A stretch of DNA of 64,000 nucleotides from NCBI GenBank assembly GCA_002104945.1, contig MCFH01000038.1, forward strand, positions 434,001-498,000, read 5' to 3'. Position 1 is the stretch's first letter; the number at the start of each line of letters is the position of its first letter. Of the stretch, positions 51,938-60,953 are shown piece after piece. Under the pieces are notes generated by a model that saw nothing but the letters and a program-made list of their open reading frames with translations, was not told the origin of the DNA and did no database searches. The DNA is from Piromyces finnis finn. Taxonomy: Eukaryota > Fungi > Neocallimastigomycota. The translations under genes and the position numbers were made by a program.

Positions 51938-53192
51938 ATGAGTCAGCTTATTAATTTCGTTAAAGATTTTATTATTTCTCTTATCGGTGATAAGTGTTAC
52001 GTTGAATTAGTTGAAAACTTAAATGTTACCAACTTTGAATGTTTAAAATATTCATTTTCTAAAGTTCTTGGTTTAGGTATGGTTTGTGGTGGAGCCATTC
52101 TTAAAGTTCCACAAATCATTAAGATTTTAATGTCAAAATCTACAAAGGGTATTTCTGTTACTTCTTACTTTTTAGAAATCTTAGCTCTTTTAATTAGTAT
52201 TTCTTACAATGTTCGTTTCGGCTATCCATTCACTACTTGGGGAGAATATCCATTCATGGGTAAATATATAATAATAAAGGTTTTTAATTAAAATTATATA
52301 TATATATTTGAATAGTGTATATAGAAAAAGCGAAAAGAATATACATTATTTAAATTATATATAATTATGATATTAAAAAAATAATATTAATAAATTTATT
52401 TATATTATTTATTTATATATTTGGAAATATTCCTTCTCAATACAATTATTATATATAGCTATTCAATGTTTCATTGTTCTTTTCTTAATATACTTTTACA
52501 AGAAAACTAGAAAGAATTTAGCTTACCTTTTAGCTCCTTTACTTATTTTACTTGTTATTTTTAACCAAAGTAAGTAAACAATACTAATATATATTTCATT
52601 TTTTAAATAGTTTTGAAATATGGTTATATTCAGAAAAAAAAATATAAAAATTATATAGTAAAAATAAATAAATATTATAATGGGATTTCCTCAAATGCAT
52701 ATATTAGTGTATTTTATAAGAGACATTAAAAAATAATAATTTATATATATATGTAAAATGATTTTTACTTTTTTTTTTAAAAAAAAAAAAAAACATTTAT
52801 AAATTAGTTATTAATTTATTACTTTTATCTTTTTATTGTTATAATAAATAGCTTTCATTCCAAACAAACTTCTTCAAATTCTTCAAACTTGTACTGTTGG
52901 TATTACAATCGCTGGTCGTTTACCACAAATTTTTGCTAACTACAAGAATCGCAGTACTGGTGAATTATCTGCTCTTACTGTCTTCTTCCAATGTGCTGGT
53001 TCATTAGCTAGAGTTTTCACTACTCTTCAAGAAGTTGACGATTACGTTGTTATGGCTGGTAATCTTATTGCCTCTTCATTAAATACTGTATTATTCATTC
53101 AAGTTCTCTACTATTGGAGATCTGCAAGTTATCTTCCACTCGATTCAAAAAAGATTGGTAAGGGTAAGCCAAAGAATAAGAAGAGAATATAA
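51938..53192 (+). CDS. MPDU1: Mannose-P-dolichol utilization defect 1 (PQ-loop) protein, 3 exons
   Basis: CLKYSFSKVLGLGMVCGGAILKVPQIIKI..GIS..YPFTTWGE, a second PQ loop GRLPQIFANYKNRSTGELSALT and GSLARVFTTLQEVDD. Stop TAA at 53190-53192. Confidence 0.92.
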
Positions 53193-54780
53193 AGCCAGGT
53201 CGAAAAAATTGATATAAAAATTAGTTAAAAACATAATAATTATAAAAGTAAAAAAAAAAAAAAATATACATAACATCATATTTTTCTTGTTTATTTTTTT
53301 TTTTTTTTTTTTACAAAAGATTATCATCATTTATATCATTTATGTTGATTTAATCATTTATATGGTATTCTTTTTTTATTTTCATAATTATACAATTAAT
53401 TAATTTCTATATTTTATTTTTTCAAGGAGTAAAAAGTAAAAATATTTTTTATGATAATATATATCATTACATAATATATATATAGACACAATATATTTAT
53501 AAAATGTTTATATAACGACCTAATTATCATGAAAATAAGTATTTAAAATTCATATGAAAACATTTCATAACAATGACACACTTACTCAATAAAGATAATA
53601 AGAATAATTCTTTAAGTAATTATAAGATAAGAAAAATTACCAAAAAAAAAAAAAAAAAAAAAAAAAATAGAATAAAATAAAAATAAAAATAAAAAGTAAT
53701 ATATATATATATATAAAAGAAAATGAAAACTTTTACGCTAAAAAGTTAATTAATTAATAAATAAGACATAAATATCGATTAAAAAAAAAAAATAAATAAA
53801 TAAATAAATTATATTTTTATCTTGTAGATAAAAACAAAACAATTAATAAAAATAAAAACATACATAATATTTTTTTATATATCCTATATTTTTTTATGTG
53901 TTTCCATTAAAATTGAAAAATAGTTTTTATTATATAGACCGCTAAACACATTGTTTTACAAATAGCAAAATAATCATTATCAAAACATTTATGTATTTAT
54001 GTGTTTCAAAGATAACATTCCTGTTATTGTAATTAAGAAAATTGATTCAGAATTAACACCTTTATAAATTGTTTCATTTCAGCGGCATGCACCTGAATAA
54101 GTATTTTATAAGAATTAATATACTATTACTAGATTAATAGGACGGATAACATCTATTGCATCATAAATAACGAAAATCATTATTTAGTTTTCATGTTTTT
54201 TGCGAGCTCTTCCTTATTCATTAATCTATAAGCCAAATATTATCTTTAACCTTATATTTATAAACCATCATTTTCCAAAAAATCAGAAAAAGTTGATTTA
54301 GGAAATTCACTATAGTTAATAATATTATCATTATATATTGAAAATTTATAAATATTAATGACAACAACAGTCCCATTTTTAATATTTTAAGTTTTAATGT
54401 TACCTAAACATTTATATTCAATAATATTAAAAATTATTTAATTTTCTTCAGATATGTTCCCAAAAAAGAAATTAGTAATATTACTAATATTACTGTTGTT
54501 TTATTCAAATTAGTAAAACAATTTATTATATTATATTATATTATTATTAATATATTATATTATTTTCTATTATTTAAATTTATTTTATGAATAATACATT
54601 GATATTAATTACTTTGAATTACATTAATTAAATCCATCTACATTCATATCCACATTCATGTAAAAAAATATCACTAGATGATAATATTGTTCATATTATA
54701 CATATTATACAAAAAATAAAATTTTGCTTTGGCACATTAATAAAAATGTAAATATTATTTTTTTTTATAAATAAATATAC

Positions 54781-54997
54781 TGTTAGAATATGTGAAACGT
54801 TATGTCACATGTATTCAAATGTATTGAAATGTATTAAAACGTATTTGTATATATTGTATTTGATTATATGTTTAAGCCACAATGTAAATGTATAAATACA
54901 TGTAGTTTGAGAAGAATGTAACGCAAATAGTTCTTTATCATAAAATATATTAATAAAGTTGACATAATTATAAACCTAAATTAAACAACTCTTAATA
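54781..54997 (+). repeat. 5' LTR
   Basis: TGTTAGAATA...CTCTTAATA; identical to 59176-59392 except A54927 versus G59322. Confidence 0.96.
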
Positions 54998-55011
54998 GAT
55001 TAAGAGTCTCA
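54998..55011 (+). promoter_or_regulatory. Primer-binding site complementary to the anticodon arm of tRNA-Lys(CUU)
   Basis: GATTAAGAGTCTCA is the reverse complement of TGAGACTCTTAATC. GACTCTTAATC is the anticodon stem-loop of eukaryotic tRNA-Lys(CUU). There is no gap to the LTR and no TGG. Confidence 0.78.
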
Positions 55012-55920
55012 AGACTCTCAAGAGAGAATCTCATTAATTCTCAAATGATTCTCTGAAAGATGAATCAAACCGCCGGATATGACATTTTGTCATAGAAGAA
55101 AACTGTAGGAAATTCTAACTATCAGAACTAAATTATTTAATCTGAAATTTTCTATGTTTGATAAAATTATCTTGAGATCTAAAATTTGAGATTTCAAAAT
55201 TTTAAGATTGAAATATTATTTTCGCCATAAATAAAAGATTCGAAGTAACTTAATATAGAAAATAAGGAAATAATCAATCTGATAAATAAAACATAGAAAG
55301 TGGTATATTTTCTAATATGATATAAGTTAATCTACAATGATAGAATTCAAACATTAAATTTCCGAAAAACTAGTAAATTATTAAAATTTAAATTATTTTG
55401 AATTCAATAAACTCAGAAAATATACAAATCAAATTAAATATAAATAAATAGCTTAAACCCCCAAGGAACAATACCTATATCACTATATTGATTTGATAAC
55501 TTTGTAGCTTAAAACAAATCGTCAATAGTAAACTACAAAAAGCTTTCAGTAAATTTAATATTCCTTGAATATAGACATAATATCAATAGTAACAAAACTT
55601 CTATTCTCAAGAAGATATGATATAGAAGTATTAATATTAAGAATATAATATGTGAAATTTGAATAAATAAGTTCCTTAAGCTTAGATTATTTATCAGGAT
55701 AATTTTAAAATTTATGTAACAAAAAGAATATTTCCTAGCATTCCATATTAATTCTATAATAAAGCAAAATTTTATAAAGATCTCTACATCCATTATCTAA
55801 AGAAAGGATATGAGAACACAATTATGAAAATTAGTATTTATCAATTATGATATATATTGAAAATTGTAATATGTAATATCTCCGATAAGGATCTTAACAC
55901 TGATGAAATTAGAAATCCTA

Positions 55921-56708
55921 TATGGTTTATATTTCCTTAAGAAGCGTGGTTACAGAAAGATTTTAATTCCACTCCTTATGAAGAGTGATGTTATGACCAA
56001 GACAGCTCAATTATCTGATATTGATGAAGAATTATACATGGTTTCTAAAGTTAATGATAATCCAGAACCAAAATGTTAGTGAACAACCAATGAGTACTTT
56101 CTATAGAGGTGAATGGTTCAGTGAACCAGAAAAGTAATTATTAGCCAGAGATGCTAGTTATTCAATTTGTTTCAAAAAGAAAGCTGGTGCTCACTGCAAA
56201 AAATACTTAGGGTCTTTTCCAGCATTAACTAATTCGAAAAGATTGAGCAATCCATTTTTTGTCAATCAGAAAAGAGCTGGGAAGAATTAGAACAATTAAT
56301 TAGTACTACTGAAGATTTCTACCAATCTCTTAAACTTCCATATCACGTTATTGCCATTGTTTCTGATGTCATAAACAATGCTGCTACTAAGAAACACGAT
56401 CTTTAAGCTTATTTTCCATTCCAACCTGAATACAAGGAATTAGATAGTTGTCGTAACTATACTGATTACCAATCTAGAAACTTAGGTAACATGTTTGGTG
56501 TTAAGAAGATGAACTCCCATGTTAAGAACTACGTTTACTTATTAAACGGTACTCTTTGTGCTAACGGACGTACTTTTTTGCTGTACTCTCGAAAACTATC
56601 AAACCGAAAATGTTTTAATTGTTCCAGAACTATTAAGACCATATATAGATGTTGTTAAATTTATTTGTCAAAGAACTCACTTCTGACAAGAAAATAGTTA
56701 AAATATAA
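55921..56708 (+). pseudogene. SES1: Processed (intronless) pseudogene fragment of cytosolic seryl-tRNA synthetase, catalytic C-terminal half
   Basis: YGLYFLKKRGY..MTKTAQLSDIDEELY, SEQPMSTFYRGEWF, FEKIEQ..EKSWEE..FYQSLKLPY..NNAATKKHDL*AYFP..YKELDSC..TDYQSRNL, LNGTLCA..CCTLENYQTE..VPELLRPY. It has several frameshifts and in-frame stops. Homology may begin at about 55875. Confidence 0.95.
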
Positions 56709-57432
56709 TTTAGGAAGATATAAAGTTTATTATATAGCATGAAGATTATTCAACTTGATATTGATCTACTCATTATGTCAATTTGCATACAATAACATTA
56801 AATATCCATATATCCAGTTATTAAAATATCCATTCACAAATATTCATGAACACATAATTACATATATTTACCAATATTTCATCTTATTTTCAAAAGAACT
56901 AGTTTTATTAACATTCATAAAATAGCATTATTGTTATTGAAAGCATACATATTTATTTCAAGTAAATAAATTGTTTGTGAAATATTCAAATACTTTAACT
57001 ACTACTATTTTAATGAGAAAATATTCTTTCCGCCATAGAGGAAAGATAGAACATAAAGAAAATACATAAAATTTATACAATTAGAAATATGAATTAGAAT
57101 AATTAAACATTATTTGATAAGTTTGTATAAAATACCCTATTGTAATGAAATTATGCAATGAACATTGAAACTATCCTTGTGAAAATGTCAATCAATTTCT
57201 TTATGATAATTTCACTCAAATCAGTATTATATAATTTAATCCAGTATACTATTCTTTGAATTAAATCATTATAACAATACTTTAAGATAATATTTAGCCT
57301 CAAAAGCATTATTTAAATTATTGCTACCTATAAAGCAAATATATTACTGGTCAAATGCTCATCCCGTAGGCTGTTATTGCTAATATACATAGCAAATATT
57401 TCAAATGAGGTAATTTATTAAAGTTAGAAATG

Positions 57433-57557
57433 CTTAGCGTGAAATGAGCATATTCTACATATATATATACTTTGAATAACCTAGCGTGAAATGGGTATAT
57501 TCAATAATATTTTAACAACTTATCATGATTTAACTTAGCGTGAAATGAGTTATATTC
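57433..57557 (+). repeat. Three copies of a 23-24 bp motif separated by unrelated 24 and 31 bp spacers
   Basis: C(T/C)TAGCGTGAAATG(A/G)G(C/T)(T)ATATTC at 57433, 57480 and 57534. Confidence 0.85.
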
Positions 57558-58571
57558 ATAGATAATTATTAATGATGGTTTTAGACCTATATATATTTAA
57601 TTTGGTCCCATCAATAACAATGTAGTACCTTCATAGTAAGGGCTCCTTAGATTTAGATGACATTGATTTATCATATTTATTTATTACCAACATTCAAGAA
57701 TGTTGTGACGCCGTTTTAAAATATAATTTACGGTGATTTAGTAACCTCATATATAAATCGCCACTTTCAACGTAGTGAGTGATCGCCGACCAATTAGCTG
57801 ACATTCTAATTAACCGAGCCGACTTCGATATAATTTAGAAGAACTTTATTCTCTTCAACAATCGATATTTTAAATGTCATTATCTTACAATATTAACTTG
57901 TTATAATTTTACTGGTATATCTACTTATTTTACATTAAAATATATTATCATGAAAATATTATTTCACTATATTTTAAAGGATAAGCAATTGAGAAAAATG
58001 AATGAAAACATTAGAATATGTTATTTATTATTTATATAGGTATTAATACTTATCGTATATGTTATGGAAAATTATTCATTATTATGAAAATTTGATGCAA
58101 AATGAATGAAATTTTATGAAATTTAAATTTCTCTTTTTCAAATCTAAGTATTTATTACTAAACATCTAGATTTGAGGGGGAAGTAGTGAATATACGAAAT
58201 TTAAAATTCAAGATAATAATTTTTGTTTCTAGTTAAACATTGGAAATAACTAAAACATTGCATAGAAACTAAGGCTTAATAAATAGAATGAATTGAAATT
58301 CAAATTGTAAAAATTTATAAGATTCAATATGTAAAAATGAAAAGAACAAAATTTCAAATACAAAGTAAAATATTCTTAAATATTATAAGAATAATTAATC
58401 AATACAAAAGGCATAAAAGGAAGGAAAAACACCTAAAAGAAAATGTTAAAATTCAATATACATAAACTAAATAACTATTAAGAATTAAATTAAAATTTTA
58501 CCATTATTAATTAGTATTTACAAATAGATTGAAATACAATTATGCTAATATTCTAAAGAAAATTGTAATTA

Positions 58572-58875
58572 TAAGGACATAAAACCAGAGAGTTATCCAT
58601 AGGTTGTCCGAAGAACGTAAAACCAAGAAGATTAACCATAGGTTGTTAAGAGAACGTAAAACCAAAAAGAGTTATCCATATGTGTTGTCATTAGGACGTA
58701 AAATCAAAGGTTAACCATGAGTTGTTAAGAAAACGTAAAACCAAAGAGGTAAACCATGCGTTGTCATAAGGACGTAAAATCAAAGAGATAAACCATGTGT
58801 TGTCTATAATTCTGTGTAAATCTCAGAGAGATTACCAATATAGTTTATAGGATAATGTAAAACCGGAAGGGTTTT
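58572..58875 (+). repeat. Tandem array of about 37-43 bp units inside the LTR element
   Basis: About 6 clear and 2 degenerate units with consensus (G/A)ACGTAAAA(C/T)CAAAGAG(T)TAACCAT(A/G)xGTTGT(CAT/TAAG). Confidence 0.92.
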
Positions 58876-59164
58876 CAATCCTTAATGGATGGTATAACAA
58901 TTTATGAATATCCAATCCAAATTTTAAACTTTAATACTACCCAATTATACAAAGGTTTTCAGTTTATCCATAAAAACGAAGTTATAGGGTAATATTTAAA
59001 TTCTTTAAAGCAATTAGCGAATAATATATGTGAAATATTTTAAATTCCAATTAATGAAATATAAAAATTTTAAACATTAGATTTAGTTTATAGTTAATAG
59101 TTTAGAAATAATAAAATGCACATATTCACCAGCAAACCAAATTTTACTTAGTAGAAAATTAGGT

Positions 59165-59175
59165 TTGAGGGGGAA
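59165..59175 (+). promoter_or_regulatory. Polypurine tract of the LTR element
   Basis: TTGAGGGGGAA immediately before the TG of the 3' LTR. Confidence 0.88.
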
Positions 59176-59392
59176 TGTTAGAATATGTGAAACGTTATGT
59201 CACATGTATTCAAATGTATTGAAATGTATTAAAACGTATTTGTATATATTGTATTTGATTATATGTTTAAGCCACAATGTAAATGTATAAATACATGTAG
59301 TTTGAGAAGAATGTAACGCAAGTAGTTCTTTATCATAAAATATATTAATAAAGTTGACATAATTATAAACCTAAATTAAACAACTCTTAATA
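59176..59392 (+). repeat. 3' LTR
   Basis: 216/217 identical to the 5' LTR and followed by the TSD TATAC. Confidence 0.96.
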
Positions 59393-59753
59393 TATACAAT
59401 ACAATATAAATTATTATATATTATATATTATATATTATATAATATATATTTTATAATGAGTAAATTATTTAATTAAATTTAAATTAATGATTTACATTAA
59501 ATAAAATGTATTATAATATATTATAATATAAATCATTTAATTAAAATATTTAAATAAAATAAAATATTATTAATTTTCAAAAATGTAACAAAATTCAAAG
59601 AAATGAAGTCTTTATTTTTTTTTATATCTAGTTTTAAAATGATTTTTATTAATAGAAATAATATATAGGTATAAGTTTTTGTTTATTGTTTTATATATTT
59701 ACTCTTTTTAGAAATACAAATAATATTGCATGTTATAATAATATTTTCGGAAT

Positions 59754-60953
59754 ATGAACAATATCGAGTATTATAAGAATAAAGAAGATTCAGAGGTAAT
59801 AAAGTTGCTTAAACATTACAAAATATATAATGAAGGAAATTTTAATTCTGAAAATATAAAAGAATTAATTTGCAAATTAGTAATGTATGGAGAAGCAAGA
59901 AATTTAAAAAATGTATTGAATGAATTATTTGAAAATTATAGATATGATAGAGATTTTGAAATTGATAAACAATTTAGGTTTGACAATGATTTTATAATAA
60001 CTTTACTTATTTATTACAAAAATAAGATACAGTTTTCGAATAAAGAACTAAAGCTATTATTAATTAAAGAAAAAGAAAAAAAGTCTAATTCTATTGTTAA
60101 TTTTTATATAGCTGATAGATATATTGATAAACTGGATTACTTTTTCGTAACACCTTTATATATTGCTTGTGTCAATAATAATGAAGAAATAGTAAAAATG
60201 TTATTTGATTATGGGGCAAATGTAAATTTCCGAAATAATATAGGTGAAACAGCTTTATTATATTTATGTCAATGTAATCTTTCTCTTGATATTATAAAAT
60301 TACTAATTGATAAATACAAAGCTAAGATATATGATGTAGATAATTATGGAAATACATTATTACACAAATTTTGTAAAAGACGTAGTGATAATGATGTAAA
60401 ATTATTTAATTTTTTAATAGAAAAAGGCTTAGATATAAATAAAGTTAATAATGAAGGAAATACTCCATTAATAGAATTGTGTAGGTATACAACAAAATAT
60501 TTTTATATACCGTTATTATTGGAAAATGGTGCAGAAATTAATATACGAAATAATAAAGGTGAAACAGCATTACTTGTAGCTTGTAAATACGGCGGATATG
60601 ATAGATTGGTAAAAAAATTGGTAGAGTGTGGTGCTGATGTTAATATAGCTGATAATGATGGTAATACACCATTATTAATAAGTTGTCGTGATGATAGTAA
60701 GCTTTCTATTTCAAGGTTAAAGCGATATTTTATTGAGAATGGAGCAGATATAAATAAAGCGAATAAAAATGGAAGAATACCTTTTCATGAATTATGTGAA
60801 CATGGAAATAATTGTATAATAAATTATTTCATTGATCATGGAGCAGATATAAATAAAATGGATAATGATGGTAATACTCCATTAAGTATTGCACGTAAGA
60901 ATCTTAGTGAAAAAGCTAGTATTAAAAGTTTAATTATCCATGGAGCAAAATAA
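59754..60953 (+). CDS. Ankyrin-repeat protein, intronless
   Basis: About 8 ankyrin repeats (TPLYIACVNNNEEIVKMLFDYGANVN, GETALLVACKYG..LVECGADVN, GNTPLSIA). Confidence 0.93.
   Translation: MNNIEYYKNKEDSEVIKLLKHYKIYNEGNFNSENIKELICKLVMYGEARNLKNVLNELFENYRYDRDFEIDKQFRFDNDFIITLLIYYKNKIQFSNKELKLLLIKEKEKKSNSIVNFYIADRYIDKLDYFFVTPLYIACVNNNEEIVKMLFDYGANVNFRNNIGETALLYLCQCNLSLDIIKLLIDKYKAKIYDVDNYGNTLLHKFCKRRSDNDVKLFNFLIEKGLDINKVNNEGNTPLIELCRYTTKYFYIPLLLENGAEINIRNNKGETALLVACKYGGYDRLVKKLVECGADVNIADNDGNTPLLISCRDDSKLSISRLKRYFIENGADINKANKNGRIPFHELCEHGNNCIINYFIDHGADINKMDNDGNTPLSIARKNLSEKASIKSLIIHGAK

Follow-up and report, generated by a model that had tools for sequence, protein, structure and literature searches.

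A spliced and decayed fragment of seryl-tRNA synthetase inside a recent non-autonomous LTR retroelement of Piromyces finnis

In the fungus Piromyces finnis, a 4,612-bp non-autonomous LTR retroelement occupies positions 54781-59392 of the window, which is the whole stretch of 64,000 nts that was analysed (positions 434,001 to 498,000 of contig MCFH01000038.1, forward strand). This element is very probably a recent insertion of Ty1/copia type, which carries a spliced and decayed piece of the host seryl-tRNA synthetase (SerRS) as cargo and which was amplified later with the assistance of a helper. The SerRS piece was borne by RNA, decayed neutrally and only then reached at least 11 copies at new sites.

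Structure of the Element

The 5′ LTR (54781-54997, 217 bp, termini TGTTAG...TTAATA) and the 3′ LTR (59176-59392) are both read on the forward strand, as are all other features of the element. They are flanked by the target site duplication (TSD) TATAC, of which the left copy (54776-54780) is identical to the right copy (59393-59397) next to the 3′ LTR. An earlier note on this DNA had described LTRs identical at 216 of 217 positions with a perfect 5-bp TSD, and the alignment confirmed this count, the sole mismatch being an A at 54927 versus a G at 59322. Inspection of the 5′ LTR by eye located a TATA-like TATAAATA (54891-54898) and an AATAAA (54952-54957), which could act as promoter and poly(A) signals, respectively. 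The LTR termini are TG...TA in every copy, where the canonical termini would be TG...CA. Other elements of the P. finnis genome with the same primer binding site (PBS) end in either CA or TA.

The PBS, GATTAAGAGTCTCA (54998-55011), is the exact complement of 14 nts of the anticodon arm of tRNA-Lys(CUU). It is followed by a leader (55012-55214) common to the sister subfamilies, as far as element position 338 in L002 and L003 and position 434 in L004, and then by a non-coding segment (55215-55854), which is restricted to the SerRS subfamily and its older relatives L026, L027 and C167:28663. On the other side of the SerRS insert, the conserved, non-coding 3′ interior (56698-59166) is common to all subfamilies. 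Homology to L026 restarts there at element position 1918, while the sisters bearing ORFs share the sequence from position 1966, and 2.4 kb of this interior are 90-100% conserved in about 28 copies. Within it lie an internal second copy of the polypurine tract (PPT) core (58174-58182), kept in 15 of the 15 elements, and a tandem array of about six 39-bp units (58573-58804). The PPT itself, GAGGGGGAA (59167-59175), abuts the 3′ LTR and is conserved in all copies.

No gag or pol signal was detected in the interior, where the longest ORF is at most 87 aa. The ten longest non-cargo frames gave no Pfam signal and no pol remnant, and a tblastn of a copia RT/RNase H frame against the element likewise retrieved no pol remnant. 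The absence of gag and pol stands as it was first noted; as no remnant is detectable, it is better said that the element has none than that it has lost them. The near-identical LTRs, the TSD within the 4-6 bp range, the tRNA-complementary PBS and the PPT are those of an LTR retrotransposon, and the combination of LTR, PBS and PPT with a conserved non-coding interior devoid of gag/pol is LARD-like. As the element has no coding capacity, it shows neither the RVT_2-type reverse transcriptase (RT) nor the PR-IN-RT-RH order of Ty1/copia; it is no coding member of that group, and its name should not go beyond copia-dependent or copia-derived.

The SerRS Insert and Its Parent Gene

The insert has a total length of 843 bp, of which 783 bp (55914-56696) correspond in sense orientation to the last 58% (3′ part) of the cytoplasmic SerRS, starting near residue 190 and ending with the stop codon. 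One piece of this cargo scores above the Pfam cut-off for tRNA-synt_2b. The 59 nts at the left end of the insert (55855-55913) align weakly and may be SerRS exon sequence with small deletions. The parental gene is intact in the same genome (C1:662516-663663, minus strand). Its exons carry Seryl_tRNA_N and tRNA-synt_2b and are contiguous on the Candida SerRS 3qne (residues 46-235, 239-329, 331-388 and 391-450), with an E-value of 1e-45 for exon B against residues 239-329. The three introns of the parent are of the GT..AG type (159, 103 and 94 nts) and are located exactly at the points where the cargo is continuous.

The cargo was compared with its parent exon by exon. The 3′ part of exon A (55914-56056, 87.9% identity to the parent) abuts exon B (56057-56328), from which it is separated in the parent by the 159-nt intron; exon C (56329-56508) follows with the 103-nt intron gone, and exon D (56509-56696), from which the 94-nt intron has disappeared, terminates at the stop codon of the parent. 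All joints are exact (56056/56057, 56328/56329 and 56508/56509). Because three parental introns are precisely missing, the cargo must have passed through RNA.

The SerRS copy is intronless and decayed, as is typical of the processed pseudogenes of housekeeping genes made by LINEs, and the genome does contain LINE-type elements in which an endonuclease is combined with an RVT_1 RT (L022). Such a pseudogene could have been inserted into a DNA copy of the element that later became the master of the subfamily. However, this origin is very improbable. The insert goes no further than the stop codon and lacks a 3′ UTR, a poly(A) or A-tract at its end and any flanking repeat or TSD of its own; it lies inside an LTR element and was amplified with it. 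Furthermore, the insert replaces sequence instead of merely interrupting it: the diverged relative L026 matches element positions 47-1074 and 1918-2546, with 589 unrelated bp in between. Finally, no free-standing SerRS retrocopy was found in the genome.

The preferred explanation is a double template switch. During minus-strand synthesis, RT would have left the element RNA for a SerRS mRNA packaged alongside it, close to the stop codon of that mRNA, and a later jump back would have completed the replacement of a stretch of the interior. A sense, spliced and 5′-truncated cargo ending inside the transcript fits equally well with a capture in the style of retroviral oncogenes. In that scenario, an element inserted within the SerRS gene or on its upstream side would give rise to a read-through transcript, which would be spliced and packaged, and a single non-homologous recombination by RT with the RNA of a normal element would restore the 3′ end. 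This second route is unlikely, as neither an element nor a solo LTR is present in the 6.5 kb looked at around the parental locus, and about 860 bp of element sequence (positions 218-1074), shared with the cargo-less L026, lie upstream of the cargo. Since the left cargo junction is also internal to the element, the read-through route would require an additional deletion or splice step. Outside the cargo, the element showed no further match to the SerRS locus.

Decay and Amplification of the Cargo

The cargo of the window element contains four in-register stops and six indels, five of which are frameshifting. Exon B alone bears an 11-nt deletion, two +1 insertions and three of the stops, and the other stop is in exon C. 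Cargo and parent differ at 98 of 778 sites (12.6%), with 33, 28 and 37 differences at the first, second and third codon positions, respectively, and GC-to-AT substitutions outnumber those in the opposite direction (56 versus 24). This even spread over codon positions, together with the GC-to-AT bias, indicates that the cargo decayed neutrally.

A use for the cargo was nevertheless considered, in which small RNAs made from transcripts of the element would adjust or shut down the expression of the essential SerRS gene. Each copy indeed offers four or five exact matches of at least 20 nts (up to 31-43 nts) to parental exons. Against this highly unlikely function, the distribution of the substitutions and the drift towards AT are as expected without constraint, and two derivatives from which the cargo was lost (L015 and C112:1320776-1322882) also have LTR junctions. 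On the pattern of its substitutions, the cargo is best regarded as a passenger without a function of its own.

The genome contains the LTR at least 41 times (98-100% identity) and the cargo 11 times (97-100% identity), and a perfect 5-bp TSD of its own flanks 13 of the 15 elements examined; chance does not account for these numbers. The insert of the other copies is 96.7-99.6% identical to that of the window. In 10 of the 12 intact copies, the two LTRs are 0-1 bases apart, and the pooled LTR-LTR divergence is 0.0023 compared with a Jukes-Cantor (JC) divergence of 0.138 between cargo and parent. The intact copies have separate TSDs and near-identical LTRs, and the 11 cargo copies all share the four stops as well as the 11-nt and a 5-nt frameshifting deletion; it follows that capture and decay long preceded the recent burst. 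The earlier note had proposed a recent insertion with an old cargo, made of about 0.8 kb of intronless SerRS with stops and frameshifts. Both proposals were borne out, and two of the checks suggested with them gave concordant answers: the parent does possess introns in the region concerned, and the element exists in many copies, which were inserted independently on many contigs.

These copies also bear on the quality of the assembly. An assembly artefact, for instance a wrong join or the collapse of a repeat, has no point in its favour and a negligible probability, given that the eleven cargo copies are distributed over nine contigs with differing flanks, mostly with their own TSD, and have identical internal junctions. 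In addition, several independent sequencing runs contain most of the words of the stretch. For a putative transcription of the element, these runs offer indirect support at most: 81-85% of the words occur in four runs whose RNA nature is a guess, and 38% in one true metatranscriptome. Exact words covering the cargo/element junction or the 11-nt deletion had no match in metagenome contigs, a result that does not imply absence.

Priming by tRNA-Lys(CUU) and the Probable Source of the Helper Functions

A tRNA-Lys(CUU) gene matching the PBS is present in the same genome (L031:1485-1558, minus strand). The 12-nt core of the PBS has 175 genomic occurrences, compared with 1 for the control, and over 30 RVT_2 matches have it at a distance of 3-4 kb upstream. 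Among the RVT_1 (gypsy-type) matches inspected by hand, none was seen beside the core. Priming by half a tRNA (hemivirus type) is a property of Drosophila copia and yeast Ty5, which use the initiator tRNA-Met. As in these elements, the PBS described here pairs with an internal stretch of the tRNA that ends in the anticodon arm, and not with the 3′ CCA end. In contrast to them, the tRNA is tRNA-Lys(CUU), and a single type of site serves many copia families of the genome. Priming by a tRNA-Lys half-molecule is thereby documented for copia elements throughout the genome of a fungus from an early-diverging lineage.

The element keeps all the cis-signals needed for reverse transcription and integration, i.e., the LTRs, the half-tRNA-Lys(CUU) primer site, two PPTs and termini that give 5-bp TSDs. 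Gag, RT and integrase would come in trans from autonomous copia elements whose primer site, PPT and LTR termini match those of the family. No autonomous element with the same LTR was found in the assembly, where 28 of 28 PPT-LTR junctions (40-nt match) belong to gene-less copies. The helper can therefore be inferred solely from short shared cis-signals. True copia elements carry the primer site and PPT of the family and begin their LTRs with the same 9-11 bases, and an 18-nt junction made of the PPT and the LTR start is located about 710 bp downstream of RVT_2 matches at C98, C202, C164, C124, C168 and C1. In L029, the copia RT/RNase H frame is followed by TTTGAGGGGGA and then by TGTTAGAATAT, as in the window element, and the LTR departs from that of the family after 11 nts. 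The autonomous partner postulated earlier is thus narrowed down to copia elements sharing these signals, but a partner with the same LTR is not found in the assembly.

Another copia family, with a frame of about 1542 aa (C123, C159, C191 and C227), has the exact junction between TTAATA and the PBS seen in the window element. It was considered as the helper and rejected as the best candidate, as the PPT junction of the window element is missing where it would be expected, even when 2 mismatches are allowed.

Comparison with Known Systems

Host-gene fragments enclosed between LTRs are known from Bs1 of maize and from the gene-carrying LTR retrotransposons surveyed in rice and sorghum (reviewed in PMC13317346). 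In Bs1, an expressed chimeric ORF arose from three captured fragments. Similar to these plant elements, the family described here is a low-copy, gene-less LTR element with host fragments acquired through RNA and propagated by a presumed helper. The resemblance to Bs1 includes the sense orientation of the fragment between the LTRs, the absence of the parental introns and transposition after capture. However, where Bs1 has an expressed ORF, the SerRS fragment is broken up by stops and frameshifts and has none, and the host here is an anaerobic fungus of the gut. In a search of the literature, no paper was found that describes LTR-mediated capture in Neocallimastigomycota. RNA capture and copying of host messages by LTR elements, which is well known in plants, is here documented in an anaerobic fungus.

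In acutely transforming retroviruses (v-onc), it is accepted that capture proceeds by non-homologous recombination of RT between RNAs packaged together. The SerRS element is comparable to these viruses in that it is replication-defective and probably helper-dependent, and in that a segment of a spliced host mRNA replaces its interior in sense orientation. It differs from them by the absence of an infectious cycle and of selection on the activity of its cargo, which is non-functional. The plant LARD and TRIM elements, which are mobilised in trans, similarly combine LTRs, a PBS and a PPT with a conserved non-coding interior lacking gag/pol; for the present family, mobilisation by a helper is likely. 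In contrast to LARD and TRIM, the slot holds host-derived inserts that differ between subfamilies (the SerRS fragment, a lysozyme gene and others), and, at 217 bp, the LTRs are short in view of the LARD-like size of the element.

Sister Subfamilies and Significance of the Family

In sister copies, intact genes for secreted enzymes of the lysozyme type sit where the SerRS piece sits in the window element. The suggestion of a gene-transducing family, already made in the earlier note, is strengthened by these copies. The SerRS piece is the sole cargo of the family for which an intron-bearing parent is identifiable in the same genome, and because this parent was identified, the cargo provides direct evidence that the family takes its inserts from spliced mRNA. 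It also sets the order of events, with capture followed by decay and then by a recent burst. This evidence for an RNA route supports reading the intact lysozyme-type genes of the sisters as retro-transduced and amplified.

Tentatively, the LTR family may be a natural retro-vector with an exchangeable slot, into which host mRNAs were repeatedly swapped by template switching of RT, while the sisters multiply intact and fast-evolving genes for secreted enzymes that attack cell walls. This broader reading is possible, with somewhat less than even chances. The gene models within such elements are listed publicly as ordinary host genes, which is a problem for annotation. If the family is indeed such a vector, the SerRS subfamily would be a non-functional by-product that exposes the RNA route, and retrotransposition would duplicate and reshuffle the antibacterial gene arsenal of a gut fungus.

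Structure and copy number of the element

The LTR retroelement at 54781-59392 of the window carries a 217 bp direct repeat at both ends, the two LTRs differing by a single mismatch (A at 54927 vs G at 59322), and TATAC forms the 5 bases directly outside either LTR end. The LTR terminates at its 3′ end in TA, not CA. A 14-base primer-binding site (PBS), GATTAAGAGTCTCA, lies directly after the 5′ LTR (54998-55011), a polypurine tract (PPT), GAGGGGGAA, adjoins the 3′ LTR (59167-59175), and the longest interior ORF does not exceed 87 aa. All structural features described in the earlier note were found in place. The insertion site is intergenic, ~2.5 kb downstream of a PQ-loop ORF (51938-52291) and ~360 bp upstream of the start of an ankyrin-repeat gene (59754-60953).

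The genome assembly searched comprises 56.46 Mb in 232 contigs. At least 41 LTR copies at 98-100% identity were identified among 136 candidates, and the cargo, a piece of seryl-tRNA synthetase (SerRS), occurs in 11 copies, in line with the multi-copy family anticipated earlier. Among 15 elements fetched for comparison, 13 have their own perfect 5-bp duplication, each different (AATAC, TAAAC, CCCTC, GTATG, TCCAC and others). The LTR pairs of 12 of these show 0-1 differences, and those of the thirteenth, L014, show 6; L014, L008a and L013 represent older or rearranged copies. A 40-nt word across the PPT/LTR start occurs at 28 genomic places, all 28 preceded by the conserved non-coding 3′ interior of the family. 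This interior contains about six degenerate 39-bp tandem repeats (58573-58804) and a second PPT core with an upstream TTT (58174-58182). This second core, kept in all 15 elements at a distance of ~990 nt from the 3′ PPT, may by analogy with the second PPT of Ty1 act as an internal plus-strand primer site. At a further locus (C200:349400-351200), three LTR copies ~195 and 404 bp apart form a tandem or recombinant array, with a PPT junction upstream of two of them (C200:350176 and 350588).

Origin and decay of the SerRS cargo

The cargo (55914-56696) spans roughly SerRS residues 190-455 in the sense orientation relative to the element, and has a single further match genome-wide, at C1:662516-663663 (minus strand), made up of four blocks that are 82-87% identical. 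This locus is an intact cytoplasmic SerRS gene: its open exon frames hold the Seryl_tRNA_N and tRNA-synt_2b domains and its exons are contiguous on the Candida SerRS 3qne (residues 46-235, 239-329, 331-388 and 391-450). The parent blocks are separated by GT..AG intervals of 159, 103 and 94 nt, all three precisely absent from the cargo, whose blocks join exactly at 56056|56057, 56328|56329 and 56508|56509; the piece is thus intronless, as the earlier note had claimed. It ends with the stop codon of the parent, without 3′ UTR or poly(A), and no other similarity to the SerRS locus was found within the element outside the cargo.

In a comparison confined to single exons, 98 of 778 aligned sites are different between cargo and parent (12.6%, JC 0.138). 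The differences are evenly spread over codon positions 1, 2 and 3 (33/28/37) with an excess of GC-to-AT over AT-to-GC changes (56 vs 24), a pattern of neutral decay on the branch of the cargo. It fits neither a diverged functional paralogue nor a foreign source gene.

An 11-nt deletion, a 5-nt deletion and four in-register stops are common to all 11 cargo copies, and the insert in the other copies is 96.7-99.6% identical to that of the window, while pooled LTR-pair divergence is 0.0023 in the 12 elements with 0-1 LTR differences. Because the lesions are shared and cargo divergence greatly exceeds LTR divergence, capture and inactivation long preceded the surviving insertions, which upholds the proposal of an old capture followed by recent insertion. 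If rates were equal, the two would be separated by roughly 50-100 fold in age, with a broad margin, since errors of reverse transcription also lengthen the cargo branch.

Insert boundaries and route of capture

A diverged relative on C185 (L026:4496-6604, minus strand), older and 77-81% identical to the SerRS subfamily, does not contain the SerRS piece. It matches positions 47-1074 and 1918-2546 of the element, which places the insert at element positions 1075-1917 (window 55855-56697). The slot is occupied in this relative by an unrelated, AT-rich 589 bp, so the insert took the place of interior sequence and did not merely split it. The relative may represent the pre-capture state.

The route that fits best is double template switching, in which reverse transcriptase would have switched twice between element RNA and a SerRS mRNA packaged with it. 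Capture by read-through and a single later recombination, on the retroviral oncogene model, is possible. LINEs exist in this genome and a LINE-made SerRS pseudogene could have landed in the element, but this is unlikely given that neither a poly(A) tail nor a flanking repeat was found at the insert boundaries. One such non-LTR element (L022:880-5415, C198, minus strand), with an Exo_endo_phos and an RVT_1 frame, adjoins a tubulin-tyrosine-ligase gene.

Primer site, copia signals and helper

The PBS GATTAAGAGTCTCA is exactly complementary to TGAGACTCTTAATC, a stretch within the anticodon arm of the tRNA-Lys(CUU) encoded in this genome, whose gene was found by pattern search and confirmed with ARAGORN. 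The 12-nt PBS core occurs 175 times in the genome vs once for a control. Over 30 matches to RVT_2 (Ty1/copia reverse transcriptase), from several families, have it 3-4 kb upstream on their own strand; no core was seen beside RVT_1 (gypsy-type) matches when the listed coordinates were cross-checked by hand. This half-tRNA primer site (175 sites) is used by many RVT_2 copia families of differing polyprotein length. A 9-bp palindrome spans the U5/PBS border (54988-55008), made up of the final LTR 9 nt, ACTCTTAAT, and the PBS start, ATTAAGAGT, so that the LTR end itself resembles the tRNA-Lys anticodon arm; in related families the palindrome is 5 bp only or absent.

An 18-nt word covering the PPT and LTR start is found ~710 bp downstream of RVT_2 matches at C98, C202, C164, C124, C168 and C1:81921, with the PBS core 4.6 kb upstream at C164. 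L029 contains a copia RT/RNase H frame (Pfam RVT_2), downstream of which come TTTGAGGGGGA and TGTTAGAATAT, the same order as in the element, and its LTR is unrelated beyond TGTTAGAATAT. With its PBS, PPT and LTR start, the element thus uses the cis-signals of the copia elements of this genome.

No pol remnant was detected in the interior, either with Pfam on the frames or with the copia RT/RNase H frame, and no autonomous element with this LTR was found among the 28 PPT/LTR junctions of 40 nt. Structurally, the element is a non-autonomous LTR derivative, not a coding copia member, and its signals indicate a helper-dependent element of copia type. The autonomous elements acting as helper are, we infer, to be sought among those sharing these signals.

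Sister elements with intact genes

Intact ORFs of 401-537 aa are present in sister elements that have the same LTR, in the slot taken here by the SerRS piece and a 0.64-kb segment peculiar to the SerRS subfamily. A signal peptide and a common hydrophobic C-terminal tail occur in all five sister or related ORFs, and a Cys-rich N-terminal module in four. Their central domains are interchangeable: L002:1538-2839 (plus strand), L003:1421-2716 (plus) and L030:5136-6746 (minus) share the same unnamed domain, L017:4727-6175 (plus) has a weak PPPDE-like match, and L004:3338-4540 (minus) has a GH24 phage-type lysozyme (Pfam 1e-23). The latter is 100% identical to an annotated P. finnis lysozyme-like protein in NCBI; relatives, gut-bacterial and phage-like, reach 50-61% identity. 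The dN/dS ratio is 0.75 between L002 and L003, and about 2, on small counts, for the N-terminal module vs L004.

Transcription and meaning of the cargo

In a sequencing-run search, 81-85% of words were found in four runs guessed to be RNA and 38% in one true metatranscriptome, an indirect indication, from this search only, that the element is transcribed. Speculatively, cargo transcripts could feed siRNAs that cross-target the parental SerRS; this is conceivable on sequence alone, each cargo copy retaining 4 or 5 exact runs of at least 20 nt to the parental exons (up to 31-43 nt). However, cargo decay looks unconstrained, and derivatives without cargo exist (L015 and C112:1320776-1322882).

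A literature search for LTR-mediated capture in Neocallimastigomycota found nothing. Among known systems, the element is closest to Bs1 of maize, to gene-carrying LTR elements described in rice and sorghum (PMC13317346) and to helper-dependent transducing retroviruses, and it works in the same way. The capture mechanism is of an already known kind and this SerRS cargo is dead; the finding is valuable mainly for the evidence it provides on mechanism in the sister elements with cargo, which are more striking.
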